Sequence record: NC_061450.1
Direction: 5' to 3' (one strand)
DNA length: 64,000 nt
This document shows positions 17,776-59,367 of the stretch, piece after piece (position 1 is the first letter of the stretch; each line of letters opens with the position of its first letter). The position numbers and the translations under genes are program-made. The notes below the pieces were generated by a model. It was not told the origin of the DNA. It did no database searches and saw only the letters and a program-made list of their open reading frames with translations.

Positions 17776-18933
17776 TTACTTTTTGTTGTTGTGAATGAAC
17801 GAGCGCATGCCATCGAAATCGTTGGCAGTAAACGACTCCTGCTCACCATCGTCAAGATCATTCATAGACACAGACCACTTGCCAGTCTGCTCATTGTCGT
17901 ATGGACCGTCAAAGGTGATAAACACATCGCTGCCACCCAGGTGACCCTGCATTTCCCACTCTTCGCCTGGCTCAGACTTGAACGACTCACCGTTGTTTGA
18001 AATACCGTACACAAGGTTATCGAGACCCAGCACCAGATTCAGTTTCTTGGTGAAGGCGACACGCTGAGTATGAGTCATGCGGCGCAGTTCGGTGATCTTG
18101 TAGGTCTTAGGCATGTCCAGCTTTTTGACAGCCTTAGCTACCTTGGAAGCTGTGCCTACAACAGCACGAACTTCTTTAGCCAGCGCCTGAACAGTAGGCT
18201 TGCGCAACTGATTACCAAACGCAAACTTACCGCCTTTAGTCTGAGCACTCACGCCCCAAGCAGAAGACGAGGAGTATTCATTGAAGTGGAACGGAGGATC
18301 AATGTTCACACTGACATAACGTGCGTTAGGATTCAAGGCGATGAAATTCCAAGGGCTTGACTGGCCGTTAGCGTTCTGCACCGGCTGGCCTGCAAACGTC
18401 AGACCTGTCGCTTCTGACAACTGAGCGGCAATGCTGTCAATCTGCGCCTGACTTACAGTGTTCATAAACTTAGGCGTGATTGAACGCAGATTTACCTTAG
18501 GCAAGGCTTTCTGAGTGTCAGTGCGCTGAGCAACAACAGGTTTGGTAGGAGTGCGAGTCTTGGCAACAACACCAGCAGTACCTTTAACGCCTGTCTTGGT
18601 AGCAACGCGTGGGACTTTGATACCACGCAGGGCATTGATGACCTGAACCAAAGACTTGGCACTAACCAAAGCACGCGCTGAGGTGATAGTCGCTTTGCCT
18701 GAGGCAGTTGCTTTCCACTTGCGGAGTTCATCATCAGTGCTGGTCTTGATCTGGTCAAGAATGTAATCGATCTTGGACGTGTCCAACTCTTTTACTTTTA
18801 CCATTTCTTCCATGCGCTTGACGATTGCTTCACCCTTAACGCCAAACACAAGTTTAGCACTTGCGATCACAGCTTGAGTGGCTGAGGTAGACTCAACAGT
18901 ACCGCCATCCAGTTTGAGGTTAATCAAGGACAT
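17776..18933 (-). CDS. Putative internal head/virion protein (basic, N-terminal ESTSA motif)
   Basis: 385 aa; MSLINLKLDGGTVESTSA; Lys/Thr/Ala-rich segment. Confidence 0.5.
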   Translation of the reverse strand: MSLINLKLDGGTVESTSATQAVIASAKLVFGVKGEAIVKRMEEMVKVKELDTSKIDYILDQIKTSTDDELRKWKATASGKATITSARALVSAKSLVQVINALRGIKVPRVATKTGVKGTAGVVAKTRTPTKPVVAQRTDTQKALPKVNLRSITPKFMNTVSQAQIDSIAAQLSEATGLTFAGQPVQNANGQSSPWNFIALNPNARYVSVNIDPPFHFNEYSSSSAWGVSAQTKGGKFAFGNQLRKPTVQALAKEVRAVVGTASKVAKAVKKLDMPKTYKITELRRMTHTQRVAFTKKLNLVLGLDNLVYGISNNGESFKSEPGEEWEMQGHLGGSDVFITFDGPYDNEQTGKWSVSMNDLDDGEQESFTANDFDGMRSFIHNNKK

Positions 18934-19508
18934 TATTGTTTCCTTCTCTTATTGTTGAGCCAGTCGCCGCCGCGCTTTTCAGCCTGATCGCTGGTGGCCT
19001 GTTGCTGGTTAAGTTCTGGTTGTGGGTCGATGTTCTCTTCCACGATTTCATCGTCCTGCTCTTGCTCAGAATCAGGCTCGGGTTGTTCAAACGGCTTGAG
19101 CGTAGTCACCTGAGGTTCAGGCTCAGCACTCGGTCCCTGTGCTTTATACTCAGGCTCCGGTGTAACGTCTTGCTGTTTGTCTTGCGCTTGCATGACGTGA
19201 TCATGAACGTGTTGCGCTGTGAGCATTTCACCCATTTCGCTGTTCAAGATCTCATCGGCACGCGCCTGATCCCACTTGTCCCACAGAATGTCCAGACCTT
19301 TGTGCGTGTAGTTCATGCCCTTAGGCAGTTTACCACGTCCGACAAAAGGCAGACCGTTGGAAGGTACAGCAGGCTCAAAGTCATCTTCTGTTTCCCACTT
19401 GGCCTTAGCAGCAATGCACTTGGGGCCCCAGATGCCATCACACACGCCGTCATAATAACCCAGCATGGTCATGATAAGCTGTTGCTTTTGATAGAAACGA
19501 TTAAGCAT
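18933..19508 (-). CDS. Peptidoglycan-binding domain protein with acidic low-complexity tail
   Basis: Likely start MLNRFYQK (GGAG RBS); LGYYDGVCDGIWGPK matches the PG_binding_1 DGxxGxxT-type signature; Glu/Gln/Pro-rich C-terminus. Confidence 0.65.
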   Translation of the reverse strand: MLNRFYQKQQLIMTMLGYYDGVCDGIWGPKCIAAKAKWETEDDFEPAVPSNGLPFVGRGKLPKGMNYTHKGLDILWDKWDQARADEILNSEMGEMLTAQHVHDHVMQAQDKQQDVTPEPEYKAQGPSAEPEPQVTTLKPFEQPEPDSEQEQDDEIVEENIDPQPELNQQQATSDQAEKRGGDWLNNKRRKQ

Positions 19509-19767
19509 CTTTAGGTTTCTCCGGGCGAGGAATGTCTTTGCCGACAATGCGCTTGTACAGGCGGAGGGCCATGACAGCATTGGTTTGAGCCAGACGAGAT
19601 TGCTGCTGGAACTGCATTGGATGTTCTTTCATCCAATCAACAACCCGCTGCAACTCACGAGCGGTGATTAACTTCTTGGCCAGCTTGTCTTGCAGATACA
19701 GACGCACGGCTGTGGTGTTGATTTTATCCGCGCTGGTACTTTCCGCCAGATTGACTGTGATTTTCAT
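19501..19767 (-). CDS. Small putative virion protein (ESTSA motif)
   Basis: Likely start MKITVNLAESTSADK at 19767; 88 aa. Confidence 0.55.
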   Translation of the reverse strand: MKITVNLAESTSADKINTTAVRLYLQDKLAKKLITARELQRVVDWMKEHPMQFQQQSRLAQTNAVMALRLYKRIVGKDIPRPEKPKDA

Positions 19768-19780
19768 AAATTCATTCCTA

Positions 19781-19802
19781 AAGAAATGGGGCCGAAGCCC
19801 CA
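19781..19802 (-). terminator. Rho-independent terminator
   Basis: TGGGGC-TTCG-GCCCCA followed by TTTCTTT. Confidence 0.65.
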
Positions 19803-19808
19803 CTTGGA

Positions 19809-22800
19809 TTAGACGTCCTTAGACGTTGACTTGGTCGTCTTCAACTTGTCCAGAGCGGCGTTGCAACGTTTGATGTTACTCACGTTGTAGCCTGCTTTCA
19901 CAATCTTAATCACACGGGCTTTAGCACGAGCAGCAGTTTCAGTGAACGCAATCCACATGCCAGGACTCTGCTCAAACGTACCGAACTTACGGCTGTTAGG
20001 CAGCTTCTGTCCAACAGCACGGCGCATCTGAGGGTTGGTCGCAAGGTCGAACATGATGCGCAAGCGGTCCTGCATCACCATCGGATAGCACTTGACGTGT
20101 TTCTTGTCAGTTGCTGCACGGTGGCGAATCTGGAAGAACTGTTTCAGTGTGGTCTGCATGTGTGTTGCCTGCGGCACATTGAAGCTCAAGTTCTTACCTG
20201 CAAACACGTCCTGAATAAACTCCAGACGCTTGGCACTCATCGAATCGAAGTCCAGTTTGCGTTTGATTTCGATATAGTCCAAGAACTTCTCGAAGTCTTC
20301 GTAATAGAACAGGTCGATGTAAACATAATCGCCGAACTGTACAAAGTCAAACTGCTTCATGTCCGCTGCATCAGGGTCTGCGGCATCCGCATAGATAGCC
20401 ACAAATCCGTTGTACACAGTAGGCGTGAGTTCCAGACTCATATCACGACCCGCAGGAAGATCATCCAGTGTCACAGCGCCAGACTTCTTGGCTACCTTAG
20501 TGACAGTGTTACCCAACTTAGGCAGTGAAGCAACCTTGCGGGCACGCACGGCTTCTTTGACACCCTCGTTGACTGGCTTTTCCTTCGCGATGTTCTCGCT
20601 GCGTTTCTTGGCACGTACCGCAGTGCGCTCAACCACTTCAACCTTTTTACGGGTCTCTTCGGTGTTTGCTGTCTGCGTTTCGTCTTTGATAGTGTCTTCC
20701 ACTTCAACGGCGGACGCTTCTGCATTAGCACGCTTGCGTTCCTGCTCAGTTGCCCAAGGCTTGCGAACCTTGAAGAACGTGCTCAGGTCTTTCTTGTTGA
20801 CTTTGGTTGCTACGTGAACTTTGGACGCTGGAATGCTTACCAGTTCTTCGCTGCCACTGAGACGCACACGCACTGTAGAGATTGGCGCGTCTGCTTTCAG
20901 TTTGCCGTCTTGGTTACGCACGTTAACGCCAACGATAACACCGTTGCCGAACTCAGTCACAACAGGCATCAGGTGGCAGGCATTTTTCAGCATTTCACCA
21001 GAGGCAAAGTTATGTCCACGCGCCCAATCAAGCAGTCGCTCCAGGCCCCAGCCGTAACGGTCAGGAATCTTCTGGTTGGCAACGATAGGGAACTGATCGA
21101 TTACACGGAAGTCACGCAGTGGCGCAGCAGGTTCCAGTGGGACCATAGCAGCAGCCGTTGTACGGCGCATCTCCGTAAACTCGGCAGTCTCAATGTCGTT
21201 GAGGTCACGCTTGGCCATGAAGTAATCCAAGAAGTCCTCGATGGTGTTGTTGTTGATCAACAACTCGCGGTTCATCTTGATTGGAGCCAGCTCGTACTTA
21301 TCGAGGTCGGCATAACGCTCGTTGCCTTTCTCATCGAACTGCGTCTTCTCCAGTGTCTTCCACATCAGGCGTGCAACTTTACCAACTTCCAGAGTGTGCA
21401 GTGTCATCACCCAATCGATGAATACCACTTCACGCTTCATGTCACCTGGGCGGCCGTTCTCGTCAAACTCGGCAGCAGCAACATCTGGACGGAAGATACG
21501 TGCAGTAGACTGGTCGTAAACACCAGGAGACCAAGGTGTATCGCAGCGGATGATACGGCTACCCATCTGCATGTTGTGACCTTCACTGATTGCCTGTTCG
21601 TTGGCAATAATGATTTGCACACCCTGATTGGTCTTGAACGCATCGAGGTTAGCGACTTTATCTTGACCCAGCTTGCCAACTTCACCGTGGAACAACACAG
21701 CAACGCGCTTGTATTGCTCAGGCAGGGCTTCGTAGATTGCGTTGGCGCTACGGGTGTAACGAGTAAACACAATCAGCTTGCCTTGCACCTCTTCTTTCCA
21801 GTAGTCTGGATCGTCCGGTGGTGGAGTCATTGAAGGAGGCAGCATTTGACGCTGATACGTCTCAGTTTGCTTACGCGCAAGGTACTTGACGCCGTTGAAC
21901 ACAGCAATATCAAGTTCCTTCGGAGTAACGCCTGGCTTCCATTGGAAGATCTGCTGCGTTGCCTCTTCTGGATTGCGGTCATCCTGCACTTCAAAGTGAC
22001 GCTTGATACGGTCGATGATGGTCAGAACCTTAGCACTCACAAAGTTCTTGACGCCAGCACGTTCGAAAGTCTCACGGCCAATGTCATCACCCATCGGGTC
22101 AGTCAGCAGCATTTCCATACGCTGGAAATACAGGTTCAGGTCAGCGTTGCCTGCCAACAGACTACCCAGGATATCGCCTTCATCCAGCTCGGACTCATCG
22201 ATACCTGCATCGTCGCTGCCGCCTTCCGCTTCTTCACCTTCTTCGTCGTCTTCACTTGCACCGCTGGCTTTGCGTTTGGCTTCGGACGCAGCTTTGTCCA
22301 ACAGCTCCAACACTTCCATATACATGGCGTCATACAGTTGCTTGTGCAGCTCAGAGTTAGGAACAGTCGGGTCCGCAATGTCAACCTGCAAGAAGGTATC
22401 GATTGGGTTAGGCAGCATGAACGCCCACGCCTTACGTTTGTACGAGATAAACGCAGTGTGGTTTGACAGACGGCTGTGAGTACGGCGAATCATCGCAGTA
22501 GTACCGTCACCCTGATCAGCAACTTCAAGGTTGTCACCAAAGATAGCTGGAGTCAACAACGCAGCCTGACCAACAACGTCACTCACACGGTCAGTTACCA
22601 GAGTACCGGTAGCAATACGTGCATAGCGAATTGAAGGTGCTGTGAAGATCGCCTTGGCGTTGAAGTGTACCTGCGAACCACTCTGGCCACCTGAGTAGTT
22701 CTTGACCTTGTGTGATTCATCAATCAGGGCATAGCTGAATCCGAAGCGGTTGACGAACTCAACAGCGCCACGAATACGAACACGCACACCACCGATATCA

Positions 22801-25622
22801 ACGTTGAGCACACCAGTCTGGAGGAAGCTCAGGCCAACAACAAAGATGGTATTCTGTGGAGCCTGAGAGATAACGTCATAAAGACGCTGTTCGCCCCAGG
22901 TGTTCACAGTGTCGCTGGTGATTGGTACAACGTTCCAACCATCAAGGAACTTGTGCGTATCGTCTGCCCAGGTAGTTGCAAGGTTAGAAGGGCACACAAC
23001 CAGAGGCTTGATGTTCTCTTCGCCAAGGTCGTTAAGCTCTTTCATCATGGCAGCAATGTCGGTGATACCGATGATTGTCTTACCACCACCAGGTGCAACA
23101 AACAGTACAGCATAGCGAGGACGACGACGCAGTGTCTGGTGAGCACCCAACTGGTGAGGCATCAACTGCGTGCCTGGCTTGAGTCCAGGGATCTGAATGT
23201 CGCTTGCCTGAATACCAGTGTCTGGCTTGAGGCGATCAACTTCCTGCTCTGCCTGCTCAAAGATTTCCAGCGTGTTTGGAATAACGTCGCTGTACATCGT
23301 TGCGAATGGCAGCACAATGTTCATCAGACGGTTTGACTGAGGAGCATCTTGGCTTTCGCTGAGGCTACTGAACAACGCTTTGCGATCACCACCTTTGATA
23401 GCAGCACACGCCTGACGGAACAACGTACCACCGAAGTAGTTGTTGAGTCGTGCCATGTCACCCAGCTTGTTGGCTGTGGTAGCTTGGAAGAAGTGCGTGT
23501 GGTCCTGTTGCGCTTCCAGCACGGCAGTAATATCACCGCCCATTTCACGCATCAACGTGGTAGTCAGGTTGGAAGCACGCATACCCGCAGCATCGTTTAA
23601 CACACGGGTTACAATGCGCATCAATGCCAGCTCAGGAGCAACGCCTTCATTGACCGTGAAGTTGTTTTCAATCAGGCCCTGATAAAGGTTGTCGTCATAG
23701 CTTGAATCACTGAGGCTTGAGTCTTCGCCAGTGAAACCCATTTCATCACGCGTTGCCTGCACAAGAGACTTGAGATCAGGTACTTGCTTTTGACGCAGCA
23801 TGTGTCCATAGGTGGCACATACCTGACTCACGATTTCATACAGGTCCTTGCTGGCGCCCGGGCTGAACTCGATGTTCTTGTCAACTACCTTGCTAACGTA
23901 ACGGCCGTTGCCTGCTTCTGCAAGTCCCGCACTAACCGCCAAGTCACTTGCTGCCTGATACTTACCAGCACGCGACGAGGTAGCAATGCTTTCCAGCATA
24001 TCTGCCGCATTACGGAAGTTAGGGCTTTCACCTGGCTCAGCAAAGTCATAACCCAGCATGTCTGCTGTGTCCAGCGCTGTTGGAATCTTGGCACCAACGG
24101 TACGGGTTGAGTTTACGCTGATACCGCCAGAAGAGGACGTTTCAACCACAACGGCGAAGTCAGGGTCGATACCGATACAGATGTTGCTGTATTTGGACAG
24201 ACTCTTGGCCAGCTCTTGTGCTTTGCGGTCAATGTCCAAATCGTTTTCACGCGCAGCAAACAGCGGAGTACGCAGCGTATCGTGATCGACGGACAGTGGA
24301 ATGCCTTTAGCAAACAGCTTGGTCAGAACTTCGTTGAGGTCATGCTCATACTTGCTGACGGTCTGGACGTCAATATCGTCACGACTTGGCAGGACACTCA
24401 TCATACCGTTAGGCATGATAGTTAGACCACGATCGTCCGCAACAGTTTGATGCACAGAGTAGCCAAACTTCTCACGCAGTTGTTTCAACATTGGCAGCAT
24501 GGTTGCCGATGTGACGTAGCGTGGGATTGAAGCACGACGGGTTACGTTACCACCACGCGCTGAACCCTGAACACGGCAATAGTATTCTGCCCAGCTCTGG
24601 AACCAACGATAAACACACATGGTGGCAAGGTCACTAGCACCCTGACAGATGTAGTCAACGATTGCCTGTTCAACACGAACCACCAGCGCACCCTCAACGC
24701 GCACATCGATAGCGAGGTTGACAGGGTTGACTTCAACAGGCGTGTCAGCACTGATCTTCATTGCCTGCATCTTACGTTCAAGCAGATTACGACCAGGTAC
24801 GGAACGCAGACCGATGCGCATAAAGTCGCCCAGCGTGTTCACACAGTCTTTGTCCAAGTTTTGGAACAGGTCAATGTTCTGACCATTCAATGACGAGTGA
24901 ATGCTGCTGAGGATGTTGTTGATAGCTTCCCAATCAAAGTCCAGAGGCAGTTTGTCAGTCATGGCATAGAACAGGCTCTGTCCACCACGACGAACATCAC
25001 CAAACACATACTGGTGAATCTGGTTGGCAGCACGGATAGCATTCTGAGCAATCTCAGACTGATACACGGCTACGTTCTTTGAGCGGAACTGTTCGTCATC
25101 GTCGAGACGCGGACGGTTGCTGCCCTGATCGTTAAACACGTTGAAGGTACCCATGGCTGCCACAGGTGTGGTTGCACAGGGAATGCCGCTCATGATAATG
25201 TCGAACCCATCAGAGTAACGCTCAATCACCGCGTTAGCACGACTGGACATGTGTGCAGCCAGCAGCGCTTTAACTTCTTTTGGAATCTTAGGCGAGTTCA
25301 ACAACACGTTGATCTTTTCGCCTTCGGAGCGAATCATCTGGCCTACGCGTGTTGCAAACTCATCAGAGCCAGCATCAAGGATATCCTCGAACTGTGCGCC
25401 ATTCTCAACAATGTAGCCGAGAACATTGTAGGTTGCGTAGAGACGTGCAACGGTGGCAGCAACAAAACGGCCCAGAGTATCGAATGCACCACGCTGCTTA
25501 CCTGCAGGGTACATGAGTTCCATGCGCTGTTTTACTTGCTCATCGATTGGGTGAAGGGCAAGTGCCTTCTCAACCGATTCTGCAATCTGGCTGGAGCCGG
25601 TTTTGGACATACTAATAATCAT
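19809..25622 (-). CDS. Very large SNF2-family helicase/ATPase, possibly virion-associated
   Basis: 1937 aa; LMPHQ, VAPGGGKT, LIDESHKVKN, ATGT, LIVFTRY, SEGHNMQ, PWSPGVYDQSTARIFR. Confidence 0.85.
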   Translation of the reverse strand: MIISMSKTGSSQIAESVEKALALHPIDEQVKQRMELMYPAGKQRGAFDTLGRFVAATVARLYATYNVLGYIVENGAQFEDILDAGSDEFATRVGQMIRSEGEKINVLLNSPKIPKEVKALLAAHMSSRANAVIERYSDGFDIIMSGIPCATTPVAAMGTFNVFNDQGSNRPRLDDDEQFRSKNVAVYQSEIAQNAIRAANQIHQYVFGDVRRGGQSLFYAMTDKLPLDFDWEAINNILSSIHSSLNGQNIDLFQNLDKDCVNTLGDFMRIGLRSVPGRNLLERKMQAMKISADTPVEVNPVNLAIDVRVEGALVVRVEQAIVDYICQGASDLATMCVYRWFQSWAEYYCRVQGSARGGNVTRRASIPRYVTSATMLPMLKQLREKFGYSVHQTVADDRGLTIMPNGMMSVLPSRDDIDVQTVSKYEHDLNEVLTKLFAKGIPLSVDHDTLRTPLFAARENDLDIDRKAQELAKSLSKYSNICIGIDPDFAVVVETSSSGGISVNSTRTVGAKIPTALDTADMLGYDFAEPGESPNFRNAADMLESIATSSRAGKYQAASDLAVSAGLAEAGNGRYVSKVVDKNIEFSPGASKDLYEIVSQVCATYGHMLRQKQVPDLKSLVQATRDEMGFTGEDSSLSDSSYDDNLYQGLIENNFTVNEGVAPELALMRIVTRVLNDAAGMRASNLTTTLMREMGGDITAVLEAQQDHTHFFQATTANKLGDMARLNNYFGGTLFRQACAAIKGGDRKALFSSLSESQDAPQSNRLMNIVLPFATMYSDVIPNTLEIFEQAEQEVDRLKPDTGIQASDIQIPGLKPGTQLMPHQLGAHQTLRRRPRYAVLFVAPGGGKTIIGITDIAAMMKELNDLGEENIKPLVVCPSNLATTWADDTHKFLDGWNVVPITSDTVNTWGEQRLYDVISQAPQNTIFVVGLSFLQTGVLNVDIGGVRVRIRGAVEFVNRFGFSYALIDESHKVKNYSGGQSGSQVHFNAKAIFTAPSIRYARIATGTLVTDRVSDVVGQAALLTPAIFGDNLEVADQGDGTTAMIRRTHSRLSNHTAFISYKRKAWAFMLPNPIDTFLQVDIADPTVPNSELHKQLYDAMYMEVLELLDKAASEAKRKASGASEDDEEGEEAEGGSDDAGIDESELDEGDILGSLLAGNADLNLYFQRMEMLLTDPMGDDIGRETFERAGVKNFVSAKVLTIIDRIKRHFEVQDDRNPEEATQQIFQWKPGVTPKELDIAVFNGVKYLARKQTETYQRQMLPPSMTPPPDDPDYWKEEVQGKLIVFTRYTRSANAIYEALPEQYKRVAVLFHGEVGKLGQDKVANLDAFKTNQGVQIIIANEQAISEGHNMQMGSRIIRCDTPWSPGVYDQSTARIFRPDVAAAEFDENGRPGDMKREVVFIDWVMTLHTLEVGKVARLMWKTLEKTQFDEKGNERYADLDKYELAPIKMNRELLINNNTIEDFLDYFMAKRDLNDIETAEFTEMRRTTAAAMVPLEPAAPLRDFRVIDQFPIVANQKIPDRYGWGLERLLDWARGHNFASGEMLKNACHLMPVVTEFGNGVIVGVNVRNQDGKLKADAPISTVRVRLSGSEELVSIPASKVHVATKVNKKDLSTFFKVRKPWATEQERKRANAEASAVEVEDTIKDETQTANTEETRKKVEVVERTAVRAKKRSENIAKEKPVNEGVKEAVRARKVASLPKLGNTVTKVAKKSGAVTLDDLPAGRDMSLELTPTVYNGFVAIYADAADPDAADMKQFDFVQFGDYVYIDLFYYEDFEKFLDYIEIKRKLDFDSMSAKRLEFIQDVFAGKNLSFNVPQATHMQTTLKQFFQIRHRAATDKKHVKCYPMVMQDRLRIMFDLATNPQMRRAVGQKLPNSRKFGTFEQSPGMWIAFTETAARAKARVIKIVKAGYNVSNIKRCNAALDKLKTTKSTSKDV

Positions 25623-26125
25623 TGTGCGTCACCTACTTTTCCATGATTATCAACGATGGTCTGCCACAGAGGAGACGCAGGGATTTTACGATCAGTAGCA
25701 AGGTCCAGCAGCGCTGCCGCAAGAGCATACGACTGATTGCGAGACAGGCGACGAAATACATCCCGCGTGTCCATGCCACGAATGTCTTCGTTGGTACGGA
25801 GCTTGTAGATATCGCGGTAGTCAGTGATCATCTTAGACAGATCACCGTCTGCGTCGTCTTGGTCAATCTCAGCACTCTGCTGGGTGTAGCTAATGGTTTT
25901 AGCCAGCACGTCAATCAGACGCAACAGGTCCTGTTGTGTGTACGCAACAAAGTTAGGCAGACCGCCTTTACCCAGTACGTCCAGCACCGACTTGGGAAGT
26001 TCAATCGGTGTGCGTTGATCGGCGCTGACACTTTCAAGCAGTGACTGAGCAGCACGGGAATACGGAGTATCACCTCGCGCGGCATCAGCCAAGACTTGTC
26101 TCAGCTTTTGGTTGGTTTCAGACAC
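25619..26125 (-). CDS. Hypothetical protein
   Basis: 168 aa, GTG start with GGAG RBS, ATGA coupling to the SNF2 gene. Confidence 0.65.
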   Translation of the reverse strand: MSETNQKLRQVLADAARGDTPYSRAAQSLLESVSADQRTPIELPKSVLDVLGKGGLPNFVAYTQQDLLRLIDVLAKTISYTQQSAEIDQDDADGDLSKMITDYRDIYKLRTNEDIRGMDTRDVFRRLSRNQSYALAAALLDLATDRKIPASPLWQTIVDNHGKVGDAQ

Positions 26126-29042: not shown

Positions 29043-30209
29043 TTAGCGTGCAACGTTATATCTGGCATTAACCCAGATGCTGCGGTTGCCGAACGTAGCC
29101 CACTTGGTGGTAGGTGCATTGATAACACCAAGACGGCCCATAGCACGCGCACCGTCAATTGCTTTGCCACCAGCACTACCATCACCAGAATTGATGCCAG
29201 CTTTGGACAGCTTGTTTTTGAGATTGGTCACTGGCCCCTGAATCTCGGTTTCAATACGTCCCAAAGCAGCTTCGATTGCTGGCGTTCGGTCCATATTCAA
29301 GTTTACTACCTGGCCTGTAAAGTCAAACGCAAGAGCACCCTCTGCTTGAAGCTGCGCGGCAAGTGCGTAGTAACACGCACACACAACCCAACCGTTGAGA
29401 ATGGTACCCTGCATGTTTGTACCGGTAAAGCCAGTAACACGCGAACCGATCTGATTAAACAAAGCCAGACCACGATACAGATACGTGATAATATCGCTTT
29501 GCGTATACTCCAGTTGGGGGATAACGTTTTGCATCTTGGCCTTGTTGATATAGCCTTCAACCAAGCCAATAGCAATAGTCATCTGTGGAGTAATGGGCCA
29601 GATGGTGAACGGATAAAAACGTTGTGCCTTGCGACGTTTGTCATCGTGACGAACAACAAGAGCAAGAGGCTCAAGTCTGTTGCTGGCAACCCACAACGGT
29701 AGACGGAAGGTGCAGCTATCACGGCGGTTGGCCATCAGCCTAACACCTTCATCACCTGCTCCAATACCATCAACAAACACACGGTTGTTTATCGAGATCT
29801 GAAAAGATATCGTGTCGCAGTTAATGTCGTAGTGGAATGGCAGGTTAACGTCAAACGTCTCTGCTTCACCTACCAGCGTAATGATATCAGAGCTGGCTCG
29901 AACATCCAGTGTGGGAGTCACCGTCAGTGATTGGCGACTACGCTCTGTACCTTGCTCAGACTCATAGGTCCAAGTGATCAAGAACTCACGGTCGTCATCC
30001 AATCCCATTTCAGGAATGCCGAAATCAGCAACCCATTGACCAGGCACTTCACCAACTGTGGCAACAATCTCTGCTACAATCGATTTGTCCTGAGGGTCAA
30101 TCATTCGGACAATGGGCCCCATTTCGTCAACTTTTGGAAATAGGGGCTCACCGAATTCATCAAGAAATGTTTCCTCTACCGAGAGGATAGTGCCTTCTAC
30201 AGCCTGCAT
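29043..30209 (-). CDS. Putative virion structural protein (possible neck/head-tail adaptor)
   Basis: 388 aa; two beta-rich domains followed by a helical domain; structural-gene context; function inferred only. Confidence 0.4.
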   Translation of the reverse strand: MQAVEGTILSVEETFLDEFGEPLFPKVDEMGPIVRMIDPQDKSIVAEIVATVGEVPGQWVADFGIPEMGLDDDREFLITWTYESEQGTERSRQSLTVTPTLDVRASSDIITLVGEAETFDVNLPFHYDINCDTISFQISINNRVFVDGIGAGDEGVRLMANRRDSCTFRLPLWVASNRLEPLALVVRHDDKRRKAQRFYPFTIWPITPQMTIAIGLVEGYINKAKMQNVIPQLEYTQSDIITYLYRGLALFNQIGSRVTGFTGTNMQGTILNGWVVCACYYALAAQLQAEGALAFDFTGQVVNLNMDRTPAIEAALGRIETEIQGPVTNLKNKLSKAGINSGDGSAGGKAIDGARAMGRLGVINAPTTKWATFGNRSIWVNARYNVAR

Positions 30210-30210: not shown

Positions 30211-31314
30211 TTACACCTCGGTCAAGGCAAGATACTCAGCCAAGGTACGCAGTTGATTGTTGTATGACCCAACGATCAAGCTACGCGCCATGGCCAAATG
30301 GTTTGAACTAGCAGCCACAACAATCTTGGACTGATATTCCGGCAGGCGTTGCATGTTCTGATTCAGGGCATCAAAGAACTGCCGCACAAAGTTAATACGA
30401 TTTGTTGCCGTTGACTCAAGAGGGCTTGCGTCCAGCTGTGAATTAAGCAGCAAATACAGGGCGGCTTGAAGTTCAGGACCCACGTCTGGAATTCCAGTTG
30501 CGAGGGCTGCGCTGATCTTCATAAGCCCCCTCGCAACGAAATCGACCACAGTCGTATCAATGTAGGCGGCAGCGCTTGGACCCAAGTCAGGAAGATACAA
30601 CTCAGGCAAGACGTAGGTGCAGAAGTATTGCGGAAACTGTTTGTCGAACAGCTTGGGCGACAGGGCTTGACTGTTGCGTTTCCACATATCAATCGAGTTA
30701 TGCCACGATGTGTAAGGCAGGTTGCGCATCGCCTGACTCACACTCAAGCTACCGTCTTGATCCCTCAATACGTTCATGTCCTGACTGACATAGCGTGGGC
30801 CAACAACAGGCACAGGGTCAACAGTAACAAAGTTACGTGTCACCGTACCTACAACGTTGTACAGCACATTCAGAAAGTCAATGCCGCTCCCGTTAAGAGC
30901 AAACGAGAACTGGCGAGGAACACCAATCGTTAGGTATTCGTTTATATCAGCTTCTCCCCACATACGGAAGTAGCGACCACGTCCGTTAATCACAAGCGGC
31001 TTGGGCAAGTTCTTGACTGGACGTGGCTTGAGGCTGAATGTAAACACCAGCCCGCTGTCTACCATGATAGTGCTTGGGTCTGGCTGACCAGCGTAGCCCA
31101 TGCTCATGTGAGCATCAGGACTGTACACGTTCACTAGGCAGAATTGCTGTGCTTTGGTGAACGGCATTTGTGCGCTGATCATGCCAAGGAGAACCTGTTC
31201 GAGAATCGCATCCACCACATACTGATTTGCCGTGCGCATCTGATTGGGACGGTACTGGCCACTGTATGTGTTCTCTTTGAATGTACGATCTACCTTGAAA
31301 TGCCTTACTGCCAT
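30211..31314 (-). CDS. Hypothetical protein, probably structural
   Basis: 367 aa, TAATG coupling. Confidence 0.6.
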   Translation of the reverse strand: MAVRHFKVDRTFKENTYSGQYRPNQMRTANQYVVDAILEQVLLGMISAQMPFTKAQQFCLVNVYSPDAHMSMGYAGQPDPSTIMVDSGLVFTFSLKPRPVKNLPKPLVINGRGRYFRMWGEADINEYLTIGVPRQFSFALNGSGIDFLNVLYNVVGTVTRNFVTVDPVPVVGPRYVSQDMNVLRDQDGSLSVSQAMRNLPYTSWHNSIDMWKRNSQALSPKLFDKQFPQYFCTYVLPELYLPDLGPSAAAYIDTTVVDFVARGLMKISAALATGIPDVGPELQAALYLLLNSQLDASPLESTATNRINFVRQFFDALNQNMQRLPEYQSKIVVAASSNHLAMARSLIVGSYNNQLRTLAEYLALTEV

Positions 31315-46841: not shown

Positions 46842-47249
46842 CTAGCGTGTCCACAGGTGTCCTGGGAAGATCAAGTCAATGCGCCAACCACACAAGTTAG
46901 ACCCATCGGACAGATACTCGTTAACACCGCGTCCCATATTAGGGTCCATGACAACATAGTATTCATCACGGTGATCAATGACCAGTTGATGCATTCCACC
47001 AGCGTTGTTTAGACTTGGCACACTGCAAAGGTACACGTTACCCTGATACAAGGTGTTTCGTCCTGGTTTGGCATACTCGTAGGGAAAGTTTAGATCATCC
47101 AGAATATCATCAAACCAAAAGTCTAAACTGTAGAGCTTGTCGTGATACAGAGCAATGCTCTCATCAGTAGTAATGTCCAACAACATCGCCAAGCTGGTGG
47201 CCATACAGGATGTAGGCGTAGGCTGCTGTCTCAGGCGGAGTTGTCTCAT
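46842..47249 (-). CDS. Peptidase C39-like (papain-fold) protein
   Basis: QQPTPTSCMATSLAMLL (Q...C), GMHQLVI (H), VMDPN (D); 135 aa. Confidence 0.75.
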   Translation of the reverse strand: MRQLRLRQQPTPTSCMATSLAMLLDITTDESIALYHDKLYSLDFWFDDILDDLNFPYEYAKPGRNTLYQGNVYLCSVPSLNNAGGMHQLVIDHRDEYYVVMDPNMGRGVNEYLSDGSNLCGWRIDLIFPGHLWTR

Positions 47250-47686
47250 GCACGCCTCAACTTCTTACGCTTGTCTGGATTGGCGCGGGCAGGCCGTTTG
47301 ATTTGATTAGCGGACTTGCGTGCCTGAGCAATACGTCGCTTGAGATCTTCACGCTGACGTTTATTGCTGTCAGTGTCCTGATCGGTACCTTCCAGTTTCT
47401 TCAAACGGTCAAGCTGTTCAACCATTCGATCAATTTGTGCAGCACGTCCCAGCTTTTGCTGGTGGACGCGTACAGAGTCCTGCTGGACCATACGACTACG
47501 TTGGGCCTGTCTCATTTTCTTTCTGGCAGGCGCTGGGTCACGCCCTTTTGACTGCGCATCAGCAACGGCTTTGCGTGCTTCTGTTTCATTGCGCTTAGCA
47601 TTCTGGAGATCGTTCTTGCTGTTCTCCAGTGCTGTCTTTTGATTCTCTGTCATCTTGGAATCGCTGAGGCTGATAACAATTTCCAT
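47246..47686 (-). CDS. Basic coiled-coil protein, putative virion protein (SLSD motif)
   Basis: Likely start MEIVISLSD at 47686 (GGAG RBS); 146 aa. Confidence 0.55.
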   Translation of the reverse strand: MEIVISLSDSKMTENQKTALENSKNDLQNAKRNETEARKAVADAQSKGRDPAPARKKMRQAQRSRMVQQDSVRVHQQKLGRAAQIDRMVEQLDRLKKLEGTDQDTDSNKRQREDLKRRIAQARKSANQIKRPARANPDKRKKLRRA

Positions 47687-47835: not shown

Positions 47836-48303
47836 TCATGCCGATGCTGTATGCCATGCCACATGCCTACGAACAAATCGTTGAACATCTGGCTCGACGC
47901 CACTTTCACGGTAATAGTTTATGAGTTCTTGCTCACTACGGAACCACATTAAGTCCTGCCCTAAAAATGAAATGACAAGATACTGGTGGCGGCCCAGCAC
48001 GTTAACGCTGAGGTAGGTATCCCCGTTGTACTTTTTGTTTGCGACTGGTAGAACTGACATTATCTCACGAAAGTCTGGAGCCGACTCTAGGCGTTTGCCG
48101 CCCACGCTCCACACTGCACCATTTTGTCCGTCATGTTTTATAATCACAGGTCCCATGCAAGATACAAAGCGTGCAACTTCTGGATTGTTGACACGTTGTG
48201 CACCAAACATAAAGCGTGCTAGATTCTTGAGATCAGAAGAAGTGAACGGATGCTTAACTGTGCAGCGGTCTTTACTTGTGCTAAGTAGACCGGACATATA
48301 CAA
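47836..48303 (-). CDS. Hypothetical protein
   Basis: 155 aa; GCTAATTT motif at 48339-48346 upstream. Confidence 0.6.
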   Translation of the reverse strand: MYMSGLLSTSKDRCTVKHPFTSSDLKNLARFMFGAQRVNNPEVARFVSCMGPVIIKHDGQNGAVWSVGGKRLESAPDFREIMSVLPVANKKYNGDTYLSVNVLGRHQYLVISFLGQDLMWFRSEQELINYYRESGVEPDVQRFVRRHVAWHTASA

Positions 48304-52651: not shown

Positions 52652-52655
52652 GGCA

Positions 52656-53624: not shown

Positions 53625-53830
53625 CTTTTATCCTGAGAATGTTGTTTCTCGTACAAAGAAATTACGACGGTACGAACGGAATTTACAGGAACGGACAGGC
53701 CGAACAAGTTGAGACTTTTCTTAATCTTCTTCAACGCCTGTTCCTGATGAGGATGGAGCTTGGGACGGATGTTCTGCAACTCAGGACGAGTTTGCAAACG
53801 ACCTGTTGGACTACGCTGATTTTTGTTCAT
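53621..53830 (-). CDS. Hypothetical protein
   Basis: 69 aa, fills the gap and is coupled to the next gene. Confidence 0.5.
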   Translation of the reverse strand: MNKNQRSPTGRLQTRPELQNIRPKLHPHQEQALKKIKKSLNLFGLSVPVNSVRTVVISLYEKQHSQDKR

Positions 53831-54320
53831 TGCTTACTCCCAGATATTCTGTGCAACTGTTAGGACATGCCTCACACCAAGCTCCTGGTTTGCAGGCTGT
53901 GGTGTTGGCTGCTCTGTGGGTATCGTCAAGAACGATCACAAGCTGCTCATACCACTGGTCGGTATCTTCCAGTGCGAGGCAGATGCTGGACAGTCCATGA
54001 TTGACCGCCAGCATCTTGTCGATAACAATGTATTGAGGACAGCCAAGCTCACCCAGTATTTGTCCGACACCTAAAGCTGGTGGCACGATATAACGATCTA
54101 CATCTTGGCGAAGGAAGCGGTCATCTTTTGTAATGAAAGCAACCTCGAAGCCAGCAAGGTCCATGTTGTTGCAAAACACTGTGTCGAACTGCCGATAAGT
54201 CTCGGAGCTAACACTGACTTCAACAACGTTCAGTCCCATCGGATTGTCTCTGACGGTAAGGCAGTTAAATCCAATTTGGTCTGACATGGAAACCAAGAGC
54301 TTATTAATAATGGCGGACAT
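53811..54320 (-). CDS. Hypothetical protein
   Basis: 169 aa; C-terminal Cys cluster (CKPGAWCEACPNSC). Confidence 0.6.
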   Translation of the reverse strand: MSAIINKLLVSMSDQIGFNCLTVRDNPMGLNVVEVSVSSETYRQFDTVFCNNMDLAGFEVAFITKDDRFLRQDVDRYIVPPALGVGQILGELGCPQYIVIDKMLAVNHGLSSICLALEDTDQWYEQLVIVLDDTHRAANTTACKPGAWCEACPNSCTEYLGVSNEQKSA

Positions 54321-54336
54321 TCTAGGTGATGCCTCT

Positions 54337-55005: not shown

Positions 55006-55014
55006 GATAGTTCC

Positions 55015-55164: not shown

Positions 55165-55172
55165 GATAACTC

Positions 55173-55466
55173 CTATTGAGGATCGTCAGGAAGATTTAGA
55201 ATAGCATCCAGATCAAGACCGTGTAGACCATGGCCTTCAGGAAACGGATCATGTTTGACATACTGAAAATTGGGACTGTAGTAGGCAAAGCTGTTGCGTG
55301 CTACGTTCTGCGTCTCGCGCTTACCTGCTGCCTGCTTGTTAGCCACGTGGCGATCAATGCGTGCCTTGCGCGGGTCAGGCTTTTTGTCCAGGTCGTCAAA
55401 AATACCAACGACACGACAACGACGGTAGTTCGGATGAACGCTGATATGTTTGACGGTTGCTGTCAT
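55173..55466 (-). CDS. Hypothetical protein
   Basis: 97 aa, ATGA-coupled to the TnpB-lobe gene. Confidence 0.6.
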   Translation of the reverse strand: MTATVKHISVHPNYRRCRVVGIFDDLDKKPDPRKARIDRHVANKQAAGKRETQNVARNSFAYYSPNFQYVKHDPFPEGHGLHGLDLDAILNLPDDPQ

Positions 55467-56497: not shown

Positions 56498-56505
56498 AGG
56501 TCCTC

Positions 56506-58179: not shown

Positions 58180-58203
58180 TCGCTTTTGTACTTCGATGCC
58201 AGT

Positions 58204-58212
58204 TATTTACAA
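58204..58212 (-). promoter_or_regulatory. Promoter motif variant TTGTAAATA
   Basis: 25 nt upstream of the polymerase-like gene. Confidence 0.5.
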
Positions 58213-58665
58213 ATTCCTTTGCGTTCGCTGGCTTTTCTTCGGAGCATGGACATGAAAGGCTTATAAAATCTCTGGGTACGTCTATAAAACAAGAATATCC
58301 TCTATACCAACATGGGATCAGAGGCAGATAACACGATGAATGAGACAGTTAGGGTCTCATGATTTTAGCGATATTTTTCGGCTAGATCTGGTCTATGGCA
58401 CACCGTAGGCAGGTCACTAGGCGCGGTATGGACGCCATAGGTCGATCCCGTCAATAGCACCCAAAAACCGTACATTAGAGGGCTATTTCGAACAGTGAGC
58501 TTCATAGGTCGCCCAGGAGCGAAATCTGTGGAGGTCGAAAAGTGCCGTCCTCAAGGAATTACGCCCAGGGCATCCGTAGACACCCTATAGGCGCTTCCTC
58601 TGCTGGTCAAAAATTTCTAATCCAAGATTTTCAGACGAATCTCAGAGATTTTTACCCGCCATAGA
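58213..58665. other. Long non-coding region with long-range inverted repeats (origin or ncRNA candidate)
   Basis: AAAATCTCTG (58265-58274) / CAGAGATTTT (58643-58652); GTCTATGGC (58391-58399) / GCCATAGAC (58658-58666); ATGAGAC hairpin at 58340-58360. Confidence 0.4.
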
Positions 58666-59367
58666 CTATTTTTTACGGCTGACCACTTTGTTTAGCTTAA
58701 CGCCGATGGACGTTAGAATGCGCTGAACCGTCTGGCCATCATGATTTTTAATTGCCTGAGCCAGTTCATCACCCTGCTCACGGCTTAATTCAGGCATGAT
58801 CAGCTTCAACATCTGGCTGCGTGCTTTAGCGCTAGGGCTTTTTCCACGCGATTCGCTGGCCATAATCGTTGTAGCAGGCACGCCTTCACGCTCCTGATCT
58901 TCCAAAGGAGCGGCTTCAACGCCTGGAGGACGTTTGACAATGCGCTGCGGACCCTCGCCACGCAGGATAGCAGCCAGACGTTCGCCCAGAGGTGCAAACA
59001 GGCGCTCAAACTCTGACTTTGGCTGCCACGTATCGCTGTTGCTGTAGGTGAACACCTCTGTATCGCGCAGATTCTCACCCTTGTTGCCCAGATTCGCTGC
59101 CTTGCGTGCCAGATCCCGGCCCACTTCCTGCTCATCGTCCTTGAGGCGACCACCTTCAACAGCTTTAGGCCCGGGCGCAGCACGGAAATCAGTGTTGTCC
59201 ACGCCTACCCGCTTATCGGTCAAACGAGATTGATCCCCAATGGCCGTAGGCTTAACATCGCGTACGGGATCTGGATTGTTGGTAGAATCATTGATTGACT
59301 GATTAGGCGTTACATTAGGTGGCTGAGTCACGGAGTTCTCGCGGCTCAGGCTTAAACGTAGTTTCAT
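58666..59367 (-). CDS. Putative virion protein (SLSR motif)
   Basis: Likely start MKLRLSLSRENS (GAGG RBS); 233 aa. Confidence 0.55.
   Translation of the reverse strand: MKLRLSLSRENSVTQPPNVTPNQSINDSTNNPDPVRDVKPTAIGDQSRLTDKRVGVDNTDFRAAPGPKAVEGGRLKDDEQEVGRDLARKAANLGNKGENLRDTEVFTYSNSDTWQPKSEFERLFAPLGERLAAILRGEGPQRIVKRPPGVEAAPLEDQEREGVPATTIMASESRGKSPSAKARSQMLKLIMPELSREQGDELAQAIKNHDGQTVQRILTSIGVKLNKVVSRKK

Follow-up and report, generated by a model that had tools for sequence, protein, structure and literature searches.

The window analysed here is a 64,000-nucleotide stretch of record NC_061450.1, from the Erwinia jumbo phage pEa_SNUABM_5 of the PaBG/Lu11-like group (GenBank annotation MW366843). 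This group is not phiKZ-like; the annotation lists a sigma-70-type factor, and its tail and baseplate genes resemble those of T4. The initial annotation drew attention to ten peptides in the window, described as short hydrophobic leaders ending in Ser-x-Ser at the starts of about ten unrelated proteins. All ten were found on the minus strand at the positions given, and eight coincide with annotated start codons (Table 1). Of the remaining two, the start placed at 48303 is a TTG; the annotated ATG lies two codons further downstream, at 48297, and has a better ribosome-binding site. From this ATG the protein begins MSGLLSTSK, so that the Ser-x-Ser leader itself is present. The leader at 41056 is also present but is not a gene start. 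The hydrophobic description failed for g191, whose leader (MPKMAKKQEV...) is basic. By all-against-all BLAST the bearers are mutually unrelated, except for g180 and its paralogue g256, which has the same leader, and for the related leader of the C-terminal part of g199. Weaker cases in g196 (FSASD), g220 (VSMSD) and g224 (SSQSD), and internal sites in g184, g188 and g191, had been overlooked.

Table 1. Ser-x-Ser leaders, internal sites and neighbouring head genes in the window
Feature	Coordinates	Strand	Remarks
g180 leader MSLINLKLDGGTVESTSA, long form	18880..18933	-	annotated start; 385 aa, CDS 17776..18933
g182 leader MKITVNLAESTSA	19729..19767	-	annotated start; 88 aa, CDS 19501..19767
g183 tag MIISMSK	25602..25622	-	annotated start; SNF2-type helicase, 1937 aa, CDS 19809..25622
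g184 internal site LLESVS/A, residues 28-35 (slash, putative cut after second Ser)	26021..26044	-	CDS 25619..26125
g188, 265 aa	28201..28998	-	adjoins head-tail connector gene
g189 head-tail connector	29043..30209	-	PHROG 17327, connector, E = 3e-167
g191 leader MPKMAKKQEVASLSA	32553..32597	-	annotated start; 427 aa, CDS 31314..32597
g191 second site ELESIS, then AK, residues 54-61	32415..32438	-	
g194 tag MEIAVSLSA	36882..36908	-	annotated start; 725 aa, CDS 34731..36908
g199 tag MTQIVVSVSA	41681..41710	-	annotated start; 642 aa, CDS 39782..41710
g199 internal leader MSIITINLGGDDVSSESA, residues 219-236	41003..41056	-	in-frame internal Met
g209 tag MEIVISLSD	47660..47686	-	annotated start; 146 aa, charged, CDS 47246..47686
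g210 N-terminus MSGLLSTSK	48271..48297	-	CDS 47836..48297
g220 N-terminus ...LLVSMSD, weak candidate	54279..54320	-	tight regex match; CDS 53811..54320
g226 tag MKLRLSLSR	59341..59367	-	annotated start; 233 aa, CDS 58666..59367

In pEa_SNUABM_5 and its close relatives, a short N-terminal tag ending in Ser-x-Ser is found on about 15-20 unrelated proteins. The tag has a short form, M-x-h-x-h-S-h-S, and a long form, MSLIxLxL...V-x-S-x-S-A. The motif logo has V/F/L/I at P5, Ser at P3 and P1, and A/S/G at P1', the hydrophobic positions being P4 and P6 in short tags versus P5 in internal sites. Since the Ser codons vary between copies (mixed TCN and AGY), selection acts on the peptide. Sec and lipoprotein signal peptides, which combine a positively charged n-region and 7-15 residues of hydrophobic core with a small-x-small site or lipobox Cys, were rejected on direct reading of the tags, in which two to four hydrophobic residues alternate with polar ones, Glu is frequent at position 2 and Cys is lacking.

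Of the 72 proteins of the window, 12 carry the loose motif S-x-S-[AKRD] within their first 20 residues, compared with 1.3-1.7 expected, and none of 1000 shuffles reached 12; the tight motif (hydrophobic-x-hydrophobic-S-[LVMI]-S) occurs in 6, compared with 0.12-0.14 expected. A scan of the whole proteome bore out the N-terminal enrichment, with 26 loose matches versus 6-8 expected and tight matches at 12 of 352 N-termini versus 0.5-0.7, an approximately 20-fold enrichment for which the shuffle maximum was 3. Further into the proteins, the 20-residue bins as far as residue 200 together held only 4 tight matches. Genome-wide, plain S-x-S numbered 43 within the 20 N-terminal residues, versus 23-29 by shuffling.

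Orthologues were compared in Yoloswag, AD1, Y3 and JA29, which together with pEa_SNUABM_5 are here taken as the enterobacterial clade of PaBG-like jumbo phages. STSA of g180 is kept in Yoloswag, AD1 and Y3, and for g182 tblastn gave no orthologue. The g194 tag reads MEIVVSLSA in Yoloswag and MEIEVSLSA in JA29 (the annotation of g194 as 'SbcD' is unsupported by Pfam or PHROGs), and orthologues of g199 start with MEKVVSLSA (Yoloswag), MEIYVSLSK (AD1) and MEILVSISA (JA29). Those of g209 start with MEILISLSQ, MEIMVSLSV, MKILISLSA and MQVLISLSK, at a flank identity of 18%. Orthologues of g210 begin MEIFVSLSK in AD1 and Y3 and lack S-x-S in Yoloswag, and the g226 tag is partly conserved (MKLKINLSE in Yoloswag, MARIKISLSG in AD1). 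Conservation of the g220 tag is doubtful because its sole orthologue (Yoloswag) reads ISSFS. The ligase tag is not kept in any relative, where QLSLKRL or QISLKRL is found. Among internal positions, the S-x-S of g184 is invariant in four genomes and the second site of g191 in the quartet, each with a flank identity of 29% and each also kept in JA29; the g184 site in PaBG gp201 reads IIDSLS, then R. The g191 leader has an invariant S-[LI]-S in the quartet.

Orthologues in which the tag is kept while the linkers drift include those of the Nudix protein g126 and of g125, g140, g183, g191, g199, g209 and g237. The PaBG orthologues of g126 and g125 lack the whole N-terminal extension, so that the tag is an addition to the domain. 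A homologue of the C-terminal part of g199 forms an ORF of its own in AD1 and Y3, with its own Met and a leader ending in SESAAK, and is fused in frame in SNUABM5 and Yoloswag; the leader at 41056 is therefore an ancestral N-terminus, retained after the gene was joined to the one upstream of it.

For the SNF2-type helicase, [ILF]-S-x-S-[KA] is present within the first 10 residues in 27 of 27 homologues found, down to 35% identity. Its PaBG orthologue, PaBG_00202 (gp202), has the N-terminus MGSLFTLNSLSAA. This protein of 1969 aa and 221,159 Da is band 1 in the virion gel, visible with Coomassie and identified by mass spectrometry (PMC7412058 Table 1). A literature search gave no proteomic or N-terminal data for pEa_SNUABM_5 or its close relatives.

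The helicase gene lies in the block g181-g192, which is syntenic with PaBG gp190-gp202 and, in the context of this synteny and of the connector g189, is a virion module within the 'replication' region. No protein of the proteome is denser in S-x-S than its member g188 (9 versus 1.7 expected, p = 6e-5), and the quartet keeps three of these unchanged, at residues 130, 170 and 226. A late-type motif, [CG]TAATTT, which elsewhere precedes sheath, portal-operon and other virion genes, also precedes several of the tagged genes that lie dispersed among replication genes. It is found as ACTAATTT upstream of g188, and as GCTAATTT 46 nt upstream of g191 and 48 nt upstream of g210; the operon of g199 begins at g200, which has the motif, and g226 lies downstream of g227, which also has it.

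Conserved Ser pairs gave a view of the motif away from the N-termini. Among 181 orthologue quartets, 66 invariant Ser pairs were found at spacing 2 versus 26-38 at spacings 1 and 3-7, which serve as internal control (Poisson 5e-7), and within poorly conserved flanks the numbers were 17 versus 2-6 (1e-7). None of the other residues in the quartets exhibited a spacing-2 excess like that of Ser. Head-region proteins with conserved S-x-S islands are the portal (at residues 57 and 545), the protease (at its N-terminus, residue 9), the major capsid protein (at residues 34 and 67), the small protein g004, and g145, g152, g184, g188 and g191. Processing sites are here read from sequence conservation rather than from observed cuts.

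In the AlphaFold model of the major capsid protein, S67-x-S69 lies at the sole internal stretch with pLDDT below 50 (residues 69-71), which divides a 68-residue N-terminal part from the HK97-type body; from residue 79 the body aligns to residues 3-278 of the solved 280-residue capsid protein 6WKK. A cut at S67-x-S69 is predicted to remove 18%, close to the loss of 'about 20%' measured for the PaBG capsid protein. This site (B) is S-x-S in all homologues at least 55% identical to the query and I-I-E or V-P-E in PaBG/Lu11. Linkers of the enterobacterial clade read Q or H at the position of the PaBG Glu, and S-x-S is kept through register shifts. Site A (LALSxS-TGE) is part of a conserved structural motif and reads D-x-K-T in more distant homologues, so that not every conserved S-x-S is a site. 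In g148, 24 S-x-S (11 expected) flank long acidic repeats, a layout resembling that of cleaved core or scaffold proteins.

As judged from its model (pLDDT 83.7), g150 is a prohead protease of the gp21/assemblin fold. The best Foldseek match was T4 gp21 (5JBL, probability 0.98), structural alignment gave a VIA Z of 10.0 over 136 residues with an rmsd of 2.7, and herpesvirus proteases scored Z 5.5-5.8; g150 also falls in PHROG 18299, head maturation protease (E = 1e-118). Residues H122, S179, S190, S236, D136 and E234 are invariant in 42 homologues, and the N-terminal S-x-S-F is conserved in most of 41 aligned homologues, fading only in the most distant.

The enterobacterial-clade genomes have 7-10 tags each, compared with 0-2 in PaBG and Lu11. 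An S-x-S excess was present in the SNUABM5-JA29 and SNUABM5-Y3 comparisons, and none was seen between PaBG and Lu11 (18 versus 15-35). The excess, the tags and the Ser-type capsid site thus occur together in one clade, and all three are missing from PaBG and Lu11.

We consider it probable that the tag directs its bearers into the head and marks them for cutting by the capsid-maturation protease, in the manner of the T4/phiKZ propeptide and capsid-targeting system but in a Ser-based variant. A Ser-based capsid-targeting or maturation-protease signal, as put forward in the initial annotation, best fits several independent indirect lines: the enrichment, the conservation at the protein level with tags kept while flanks drift, the motif at the expected processing points of capsid, portal and protease, the gp21-fold protease, the virion helicase of PaBG and the clade co-distribution. 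A hydrophobic residue, x, Ser-x-Ser and then a small residue (A/S/G) would form the recognition and cleavage motif of prohead maturation in the enterobacterial clade, with the scissile bond presumably after the second Ser. Placed at the extreme N-terminus, the motif would work like a T4 capsid-targeting sequence, bringing otherwise unrelated proteins into the assembling prohead, where it would be removed, most likely by g150. Among the proteins predicted to be packaged are the SNF2 helicase of 1937 aa, a Nudix hydrolase, an MmcB-like nuclease, proteins with KMPT-N domains and several small proteins that are basic or charged, all of which would leave the capsid together with the DNA.

Several points speak against this reading. 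To our knowledge every characterised gp21-type protease cuts after Glu, and Ser at P1 would therefore be a real change of specificity. A Nudix hydrolase and similar enzymes would be unusual capsid cargo. The hydrophobic register of short tags does not match that of internal sites, and the ligase tag is unconserved.

The motif could instead be a docking signal only, a short beta-strand that binds scaffold, core or portal, with protease cuts remaining of the Glu type, as in T4. The N-termini of the PaBG virion helicase and protease carry S-x-S, yet the PaBG capsid site looks like I-I-E, so that the motif could be docking signal rather than scissile site. Moreover, g209 orthologues keep [AS]-L-E-N about 20 residues past the tag, which fits phiKZ-type S/A/G-x-E, I-Q-E stands beside S-E-S at the capsid site of JA29, and the fixed distance of short tags from Met suggests recognition of a free N-terminus. 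We nevertheless regard docking alone as unlikely, as no Glu site is conserved between tag and domain in the Nudix protein and g140, the enterobacterial capsid linker has Q or H in place of the PaBG Glu and keeps S-x-S, and the S-x-S repeated on either side of the g148 acidic repeats resemble cut sites.

A quite unlikely candidate for the cutting enzyme, in place of the gp21-fold protease, is the HExxH metallopeptidase g149 (HELAH at residue 269, two KMPT-N domains). Its gene lies in the head module adjoining the prohead protease gene, Yoloswag, AD1, Y3 and JA29 have it and PaBG/Lu11 lack it, the same distribution as the S-x-S excess, and gp21-type enzymes characterised to date cut after Glu. 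However, such co-occurrence is weak evidence because about three quarters of all genes are missing from PaBG. In addition, the KMPT-N proteins g140 and g156 carry tags themselves, which suits cargo better than a processing enzyme, and a wide range of homologues of the gp21-fold protease begin with the motif themselves, as expected for autoprocessing.

That S-x-S is a modification sequon of virion proteins, O-glycosylated by the glycosyltransferase g153 or phosphorylated, is very improbable. The conserved residues are indeed two serines, and the g153 gene lies in the head module, between head genes and the ligase gene; but PaBG and Lu11 have g153 homologues too and no S-x-S excess, and a sequon leaves unexplained the fixed extreme N-terminal position on unrelated proteins, the upstream hydrophobic requirement and the location of the capsid site within a portion that PaBG removes at maturation. 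We give equally little credence to a role outside the virion, whether in timed turnover, as a degron or a handle for chaperones, or in docking to a shared replication partner such as the phage sliding clamp. Many bearers lie among replication genes, and QLSLS in the ligase leader is similar to the bacterial beta-clamp motif QL[SD]LF, which was tried as a candidate and rejected: only the ligase comes near it, its motif is unconserved in every relative, and the tags have neither Gln nor an aromatic end. The bearers are mostly not replication proteins, the capsid protein, portal and protease bear the same motif, and PaBG virions contain the orthologue of the tagged helicase. An origin by chance or composition (Ser-rich, AT-rich codon preference near starts and a pattern-seeking eye) has next to no standing: plain S-x-S is only 1.5-1.9 times the shuffle expectation, but this reading is contradicted by the tight-motif enrichment and its confinement to N-termini, by conservation of the tag across five genomes and by the internally controlled spacing-2 excess.

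The cutting and head-loading signal that we favour has parallels in known systems. The T4 prohead protease cuts after Glu, in L/I-x-E. Like the tag described here, the T4 capsid-targeting sequence (MKTYQEFIAE) is of fixed length, about 8-10 residues, forms the very N-terminus of proteins that are otherwise unrelated and ends in a motif that also marks head-protein maturation sites, and T4 gp21 shares its fold with g150 (Z 10). In contrast to T4, P1 and P3 are Ser, the tags have no sequence similarity to the T4 sequence, the predicted cargo includes large enzymes, and the pEa_SNUABM_5 case is known from sequence. With Ser at P1 and P3, and Q or H for Glu in the capsid linker, the system would therefore be a variant rather than a member of the Glu-type code. 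Foreign proteins that carry the T4 sequence are directed into the head and can be processed (Mullaney and Black 1996, cited by PMC10052503 and PMC9024508).

In the jumbo phages phiKZ, 201phi2-1 and SPN3US, many head and ejection proteins lose N-terminal propeptides through gp175/gp245, and capsid, portal and protease proteins of phiKZ-type phages are all processed. The cleavage motif of phiKZ/SPN3US is S/A/G-x-E with Ser preferred at P1' (A-x-E in SPN3US), and shares with the logo found here a small P3, any P2 and a small P1', with an upstream hydrophobic residue at P4 in SPN3US and at P4 or P5 here (PMC10052503). The two motifs differ essentially only at P1, Ser here versus Glu. Propeptide length is mostly 111-254 residues in SPN3US compared with mostly 8-18 for the tags.

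For the tagged SNF2 helicase, whose PaBG orthologue is in the virion, a parallel is found in another very large helicase-type protein, DarB of phage P1, a head-packaged 250-kDa anti-restriction protein of helicase/methyltransferase type, which is directed to the head by an N-terminal signal shorter than 30 residues; the signal also works on a reporter protein (PMC9024508). The two have no sequence relation, and the DarB signal is not reported to be common to many proteins or to match a cleavage site, the P1 capsid protein being cut at E120/S121.

The herpesvirus assemblin maturation site is V/L-x-A, then S. Assemblin differs from the case described here in the residues and their register, in its eukaryotic host and in having no N-terminal cargo tag; it has the same fold as g150 (Z 5.5-5.8), and the two sites share small residues at the scissile bond, an upstream hydrophobic residue, and Ser/Ala flanking the cut.

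Ten leader peptides ending in Ser-x-Ser (S-x-S) had been claimed for the window in the initial annotation and read there as a Ser-based capsid-targeting or maturation-protease signal. All ten were found in the sequence, eight of them at annotated starts; those at 48303 and 41056 are not annotated starts. The source, Erwinia phage pEa_SNUABM_5 (MW366843, genus Rivsvirus, 267,169 bp, 352 CDS), of which the window covers bases 124001-188000, is annotated with T4-like tail and baseplate genes, a sigma-70-type factor and a prohead protease, and is not a phiKZ-like phage. Its nearest phages by DNA are Yoloswag, pEa_SNUABM_33, AD1, 2910A and Alexandra, and the Pseudomonas phages PaBG and Lu11 have been grouped with Yoloswag, Y3, Alexandra and the Dickeya phages AD1 and JA29 (PMC7412058).

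Motifs were counted from the GenBank starts of all 352 genes, since our own start caller agreed with just 48 of 66 annotated starts and was dropped. The loose motif S-x-S-[AKRD] lies within the first 20 residues of 26 proteins, where 6-8 were expected, and the tight motif [ILVMF]-x-[ILVMF]-S-[LVMI]-S was found genome-wide at 12 N-termini (0.5-0.7 expected; at most 3 in shuffles). Beyond the first 20 residues the tight motif gave four matches in total over 20-residue bins to residue 200. In the window, 12 of 72 proteins carry the loose motif (1.3-1.7 expected) and six the tight one (0.12-0.14 expected). The first Ser follows exactly five residues after Met in eight proteins, as in MEIAVSLS, MEIVISLS, MEIIISLS, MEIMISLS, MKLRLSLS and MKLRVSLS. 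The serines are encoded by TCA, TCT, TCG, AGC and AGT, differing from copy to copy, and the constraint therefore acts at the peptide rather than the nucleic-acid level; a signal at the DNA or RNA level was ruled out, as both Ser and Leu codons vary among the tags. All-against-all BLAST of the tag bearers gave a single link, g180-g256, and paralogy as the origin of the common leader was ruled out save for g180/g256 and the C-terminal part of g199. A clamp-binding motif was rejected as the identity of the tag. Pfam and PHROGs searches assigned no function to most tag bearers.

The tag was also found in related phages. When start codons followed by the tag were sought without recourse to annotation, 7-9 tagged long ORFs were obtained in each of Yoloswag, AD1 and Y3, about nine in JA29 and two in Lu11, and no convincing one in PaBG; the independent annotation of Y3 calls identical starts. 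Orthologues of the Nudix hydrolase begin with MKLRVSLSA, MEIIVSLSA, MMINVSLSA and MMLNVSLSA, behind which the linkers diverge up to the conserved domain, and the tag is likewise retained beside a diverged linker in the orthologues of g079, g125, g140, g180/g256, g183, g191, g199, g209 and g237. In PaBG, the orthologues of g125 and of the Nudix protein have no N-terminal extension, so that the tag is an addition to the domain. Among homologues of the SNF2 helicase g183 from a large protein collection, 27 of 27 have [ILF]-S-x-S-[KA] inside the first ten residues, down to 35% identity. The homologue in Yersinia phage fHe-Yen9-02 is longer (2458 aa against about 1940), with an extra PF14528 (LAGLIDADG-type) domain between SNF2 and helicase-C that is probably an intein or a homing-endonuclease insertion. 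The ligase tag was seen in pEa_SNUABM_5 only and is probably non-functional; it was not counted as a member, and neither were g196, g220 and g224, all being poorly conserved.

As read from aligned orthologues, the motif extends beyond N-termini. Invariant Ser pairs were tallied by spacing in 181 orthologue quartets (pEa_SNUABM_5, Yoloswag, AD1 and Y3), and 66 pairs occurred at spacing 2 against 26-38 at spacings 1 and 3-7 (Poisson 5e-7); when only flanks of at most 35% identity were considered, the numbers were 17 against 2-6 (1e-7). No comparable excess at spacing 2 was seen in the same quartets for Ala, Thr, Gly, Asp, Glu, Asn, Lys, Leu or Pro. The conserved islands share a logo with V/F/L/I at P5, Ser at P3, any residue at P2, Ser at P1 and A/S/G at P1'. 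The S-x-S density outliers of the proteome are g188 (9 against 1.7 expected) and g148 (24 against 11), the latter having, like its orthologues, long acidic repeats bracketed by S-x-S. A run of about 150 residues in g148 is almost pure Asp/Glu, and the AD1 and Y3 orthologues carry several acidic repeats with [FI]-[DE]-S-E-S-[GS] between them. Protein g148 looks like a scaffold or core protein, and its PHROG label 'ATPase' seems wrong.

Coordinates of leaders, genes, intergenic motifs and conserved S-x-S islands in pEa_SNUABM_5
Feature	Frame	Position	Strand	Remark
S-x-S leader	window	48303		TTG, two codons 5' of the annotated ATG at 48297
S-x-S leader	window	41056		Met inside gene 199
Annotated DNA polymerase III beta subunit	window	13064-14242	-	
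Gene 193	window	33608-34657	-	
Gene 194	window	34731-36908	-	annotated 'exonuclease SbcD'
Gene 199	window	39782-41710	-	
g148	genome	103834-105936	-	700 aa; outside the window
g149	genome	106016-107095	-	outside the window; adjoins the prohead protease gene
CTAATTT	window	e.g. upstream of 32597, 28998, 48297, 5996		
CTGTAAATA	window	e.g. upstream of 17672, 34657, 49714		
GC-rich hairpin and T-run	window	9938, 47686; upstream of 19767		9938, upstream of gene 172; 47686, upstream of gene 209
GC-rich hairpin and T-run	genome	upstream of 97975, 196817		
S-x-S island, portal	residues	57 and 545-548		quartet conservation
S-x-S island, g004				quartet conservation; small protein, gene between terminase and portal genes
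S-x-S island, major capsid protein	residues	34 and 67		quartet conservation
S-x-S island, prohead protease		N-terminus		quartet conservation
S-x-S islands, g145, g152, g122, g184				quartet conservation
S-x-S islands, g188				quartet conservation; three sites
S-x-S islands, g191				quartet conservation; two sites
S-x-S islands, tagged proteins		N-termini		quartet conservation

The capsid-protein site varies among four genomes (IVQSTS|S, LVHSES|S, LVHSHS|G and LVHSQS|A), with a flank identity of 8%. Among 90 capsid homologues, all those at least about 55% identical to the query have S-x-S at most four residues after a conserved G-x-h-h, even under register shift, and more distant ones have I-V-E, V-V-E or P-E in its place. 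Another capsid site, LALSxS-TGE, is doubtful, its serines being replaced in more distant homologues. The AlphaFold model of the capsid protein (pLDDT 87.7) has a single internal stretch with pLDDT below 50, residues 69-71, which divides a 68-residue N-terminal part from an HK97-type body; the body aligns from residue 79 with residues 3-278 of the solved 280-residue capsid protein 6WKK (E = 1e-8). A cut at the predicted S-x-S site would remove 69 of 371 residues (18.6%); the PaBG capsid protein loses about 20% on maturation, and several PaBG virion proteins undergo multiple proteolysis (PMC7412058). The prohead protease g150 itself has S-x-S-F near its N-terminus in most of 41 aligned homologues, fading in the most distant ones only. 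A sequence search of the PDB with g150 gave no match and only the fold search did: its model (pLDDT 83.7) best matches T4 gp21 (Foldseek probability 0.98; VIA-align Z 10.0 over 136 residues, rmsd 2.7), followed by herpesvirus proteases (Z 5.5-5.8). Capsid and helicase homologues labelled 'Salmonella enterica serovar Infantis' sit on contigs of about 266-267 kb, apparently a jumbo phage of this group deposited inside a bacterial assembly.

The spacing-2 excess, abundant N-terminal tags and the S-x-S capsid site are united in one clade. In pairwise comparisons, the excess was seen between pEa_SNUABM_5 and Y3 (180 against 130-141) and between pEa_SNUABM_5 and JA29 (88 against 44-64), and no excess between PaBG and Lu11 (18 against 15-35). 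The capsid site is I-I-E in PaBG and V-P-E in Lu11, resembling the T4 L/I-x-E code, and that of JA29, I-Q-E-V-S-E-S, is both Glu-type and S-x-S.

Packaging of the SNF2 helicase, predicted in the initial annotation, could be compared with a measured virion, that of PaBG. Virion band 1 of PaBG was assigned to gp202, a 'RuvB helicase-like protein' of 221,161.95 Da (Table 1 of PMC7412058). PaBG_00202 is a helicase of 1969 residues and 221,159 Da, and the gp numbering also agrees with the mass of gp191 and with the annotated products of gp213 and gp215. PaBG_00202, with the N-terminus MGSLFTLNSLSAA, is the orthologue of g183 (31% identity over 93% of the length), and both lie in a syntenic block with the head-tail connector. 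The packaging prediction therefore has experimental support in a relative. Trimming of the N-terminus would not show at gel resolution. In the Creative Commons literature, no virion proteome was found for pEa_SNUABM_5, Yoloswag, AD1, Y3 or fHe-Yen9-02, and no S-x-S prohead-protease motif or link.

Among known systems, three come closest: the T4 capsid-targeting sequence with gp21; the propeptides of phiKZ/SPN3US, which are cleaved at S/A/G-x-E (PMC10052503); and the N-terminal packaging signal of the 250-kDa P1 protein DarB (PMC9024508). The phiKZ/SPN3US logo has in common with S-x-S a hydrophobic upstream position, a small P3, a free P2 and a small P1', but P1 is Glu in phiKZ/SPN3US and Ser in pEa_SNUABM_5. 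With a like architecture and Ser for Glu at P1, S-x-S is therefore rather probably a Ser-based variant of the T4/phiKZ type of system.

The remaining probability is shared by five other readings. S-x-S may be a docking-only signal, with cuts of the Glu type, a sequence type that JA29 carries next to S-x-S in its capsid site. It may also be cleaved by g149, a clade-specific HExxH peptidase. This protein combines two KMPT-N domains with a HELAH zinc-peptidase motif and occurs in Yoloswag, AD1, Y3 and JA29 but in neither PaBG nor Lu11; the KMPT-N proteins g140 and g156 bear the Ser tag. A modification sequon is a further candidate, but the head-module glycosyltransferase g153, rejected as a partner of the motif, has homologues in PaBG and Lu11 and does not co-vary with it. 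Against a tag role unrelated to the virion stands the presence of the helicase orthologue in PaBG particles. Chance faces counts in the window that were reached in none of 1000 shuffles for either motif.

Within the Ser-based reading, a more specific scheme is put forward tentatively. It supposes that, in one enterobacterial clade of PaBG-like jumbo phages, the P1 preference of the gp21-type prohead protease changed from Glu to Ser and that every substrate (capsid, portal, core and the protease itself) co-evolved with the enzyme; the JA29 capsid site would represent a transitional state. The eight residues M-E-I-x-V-S-L-S would then serve as a portable code directing at least 15 enzymes into the capsid, to be injected as a first-minute counter-defence cargo that would include the 215-kDa SNF2 helicase, the Nudix hydrolase and a PD-(D/E)xK-type nuclease. 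If the interpretation is right, the proteins that a poorly known group of jumbo phages injects could be listed straight from the genome sequence, giving as early-effector candidates the helicase, the Nudix hydrolase, the nuclease, the KMPT-N proteins and several small basic proteins. This would be the first gp21-family protease system without Glu at P1, as far as the literature found goes, and, as relatives appear to retain the ancestral code, a natural case of a protease and its substrates changing specificity together. A defined tag of 8-9 residues might be used to load foreign proteins into large capsids, like the T4 and P1 signals. pEa_SNUABM_5, Y3 and Yoloswag are under study for fire-blight biocontrol, and their virion content is thus of practical value.

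Two motifs, CTGTAAATA and [CG]TAATTT, recur in intergenic regions. The former lies upstream of polymerase, ligase, clamp-loader, primase, SSB and sigma genes, with 21 of 31 copies within the intergenic 4.6% of the genome. The latter lies upstream of both sheath genes, the g004-portal operon, g163 and g188, and of the tagged genes or operon heads g004, g156, g191, g210 (then g209), g200 (then g199), g227 (then g226) and g254 (then g255 and g256). They could be middle and late promoters, respectively, [CG]TAATTT perhaps being read by the phage sigma factor g248. As a weaker line and side observation, the pattern agrees with late expression, of the virion type, for tagged genes situated amid replication genes. 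Just 5' of several genes, a GC-rich hairpin is followed by a T-run that passes into a ribosome-binding region of almost identical sequence, and genes 172 and 209 share TTTGGAGCACGT-ATG exactly; such starts resemble units of terminator read-through or re-initiation.

The leader at 41056 belongs to a region whose homologue stands alone as a gene in AD1 and Y3, with its own Met and a leader that has SESAAK at its end; gene 199 in pEa_SNUABM_5 and Yoloswag consists of two genes fused in frame. The C-terminal 424 residues of gene 199 are very basic and Lys/Ala-rich, retain their own leader and have a further RSTS|A site near residue 555. For the annotated DNA polymerase III beta subunit no Pfam clamp match was obtained at E = 0.01 or better; support for the assignment comes from the depositor's annotation and from 24% identity to PaBG_00207, an annotated beta subunit. 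Gene 194 had no Pfam match and a weak PHROG match of unknown function. Its neighbour, gene 193, is orthologous to the PaBG SbcD subunit and starts with MLEALVTADWHLE, a motif I of the Mre11/SbcD type; the name SbcD seems to have been given to the wrong gene.
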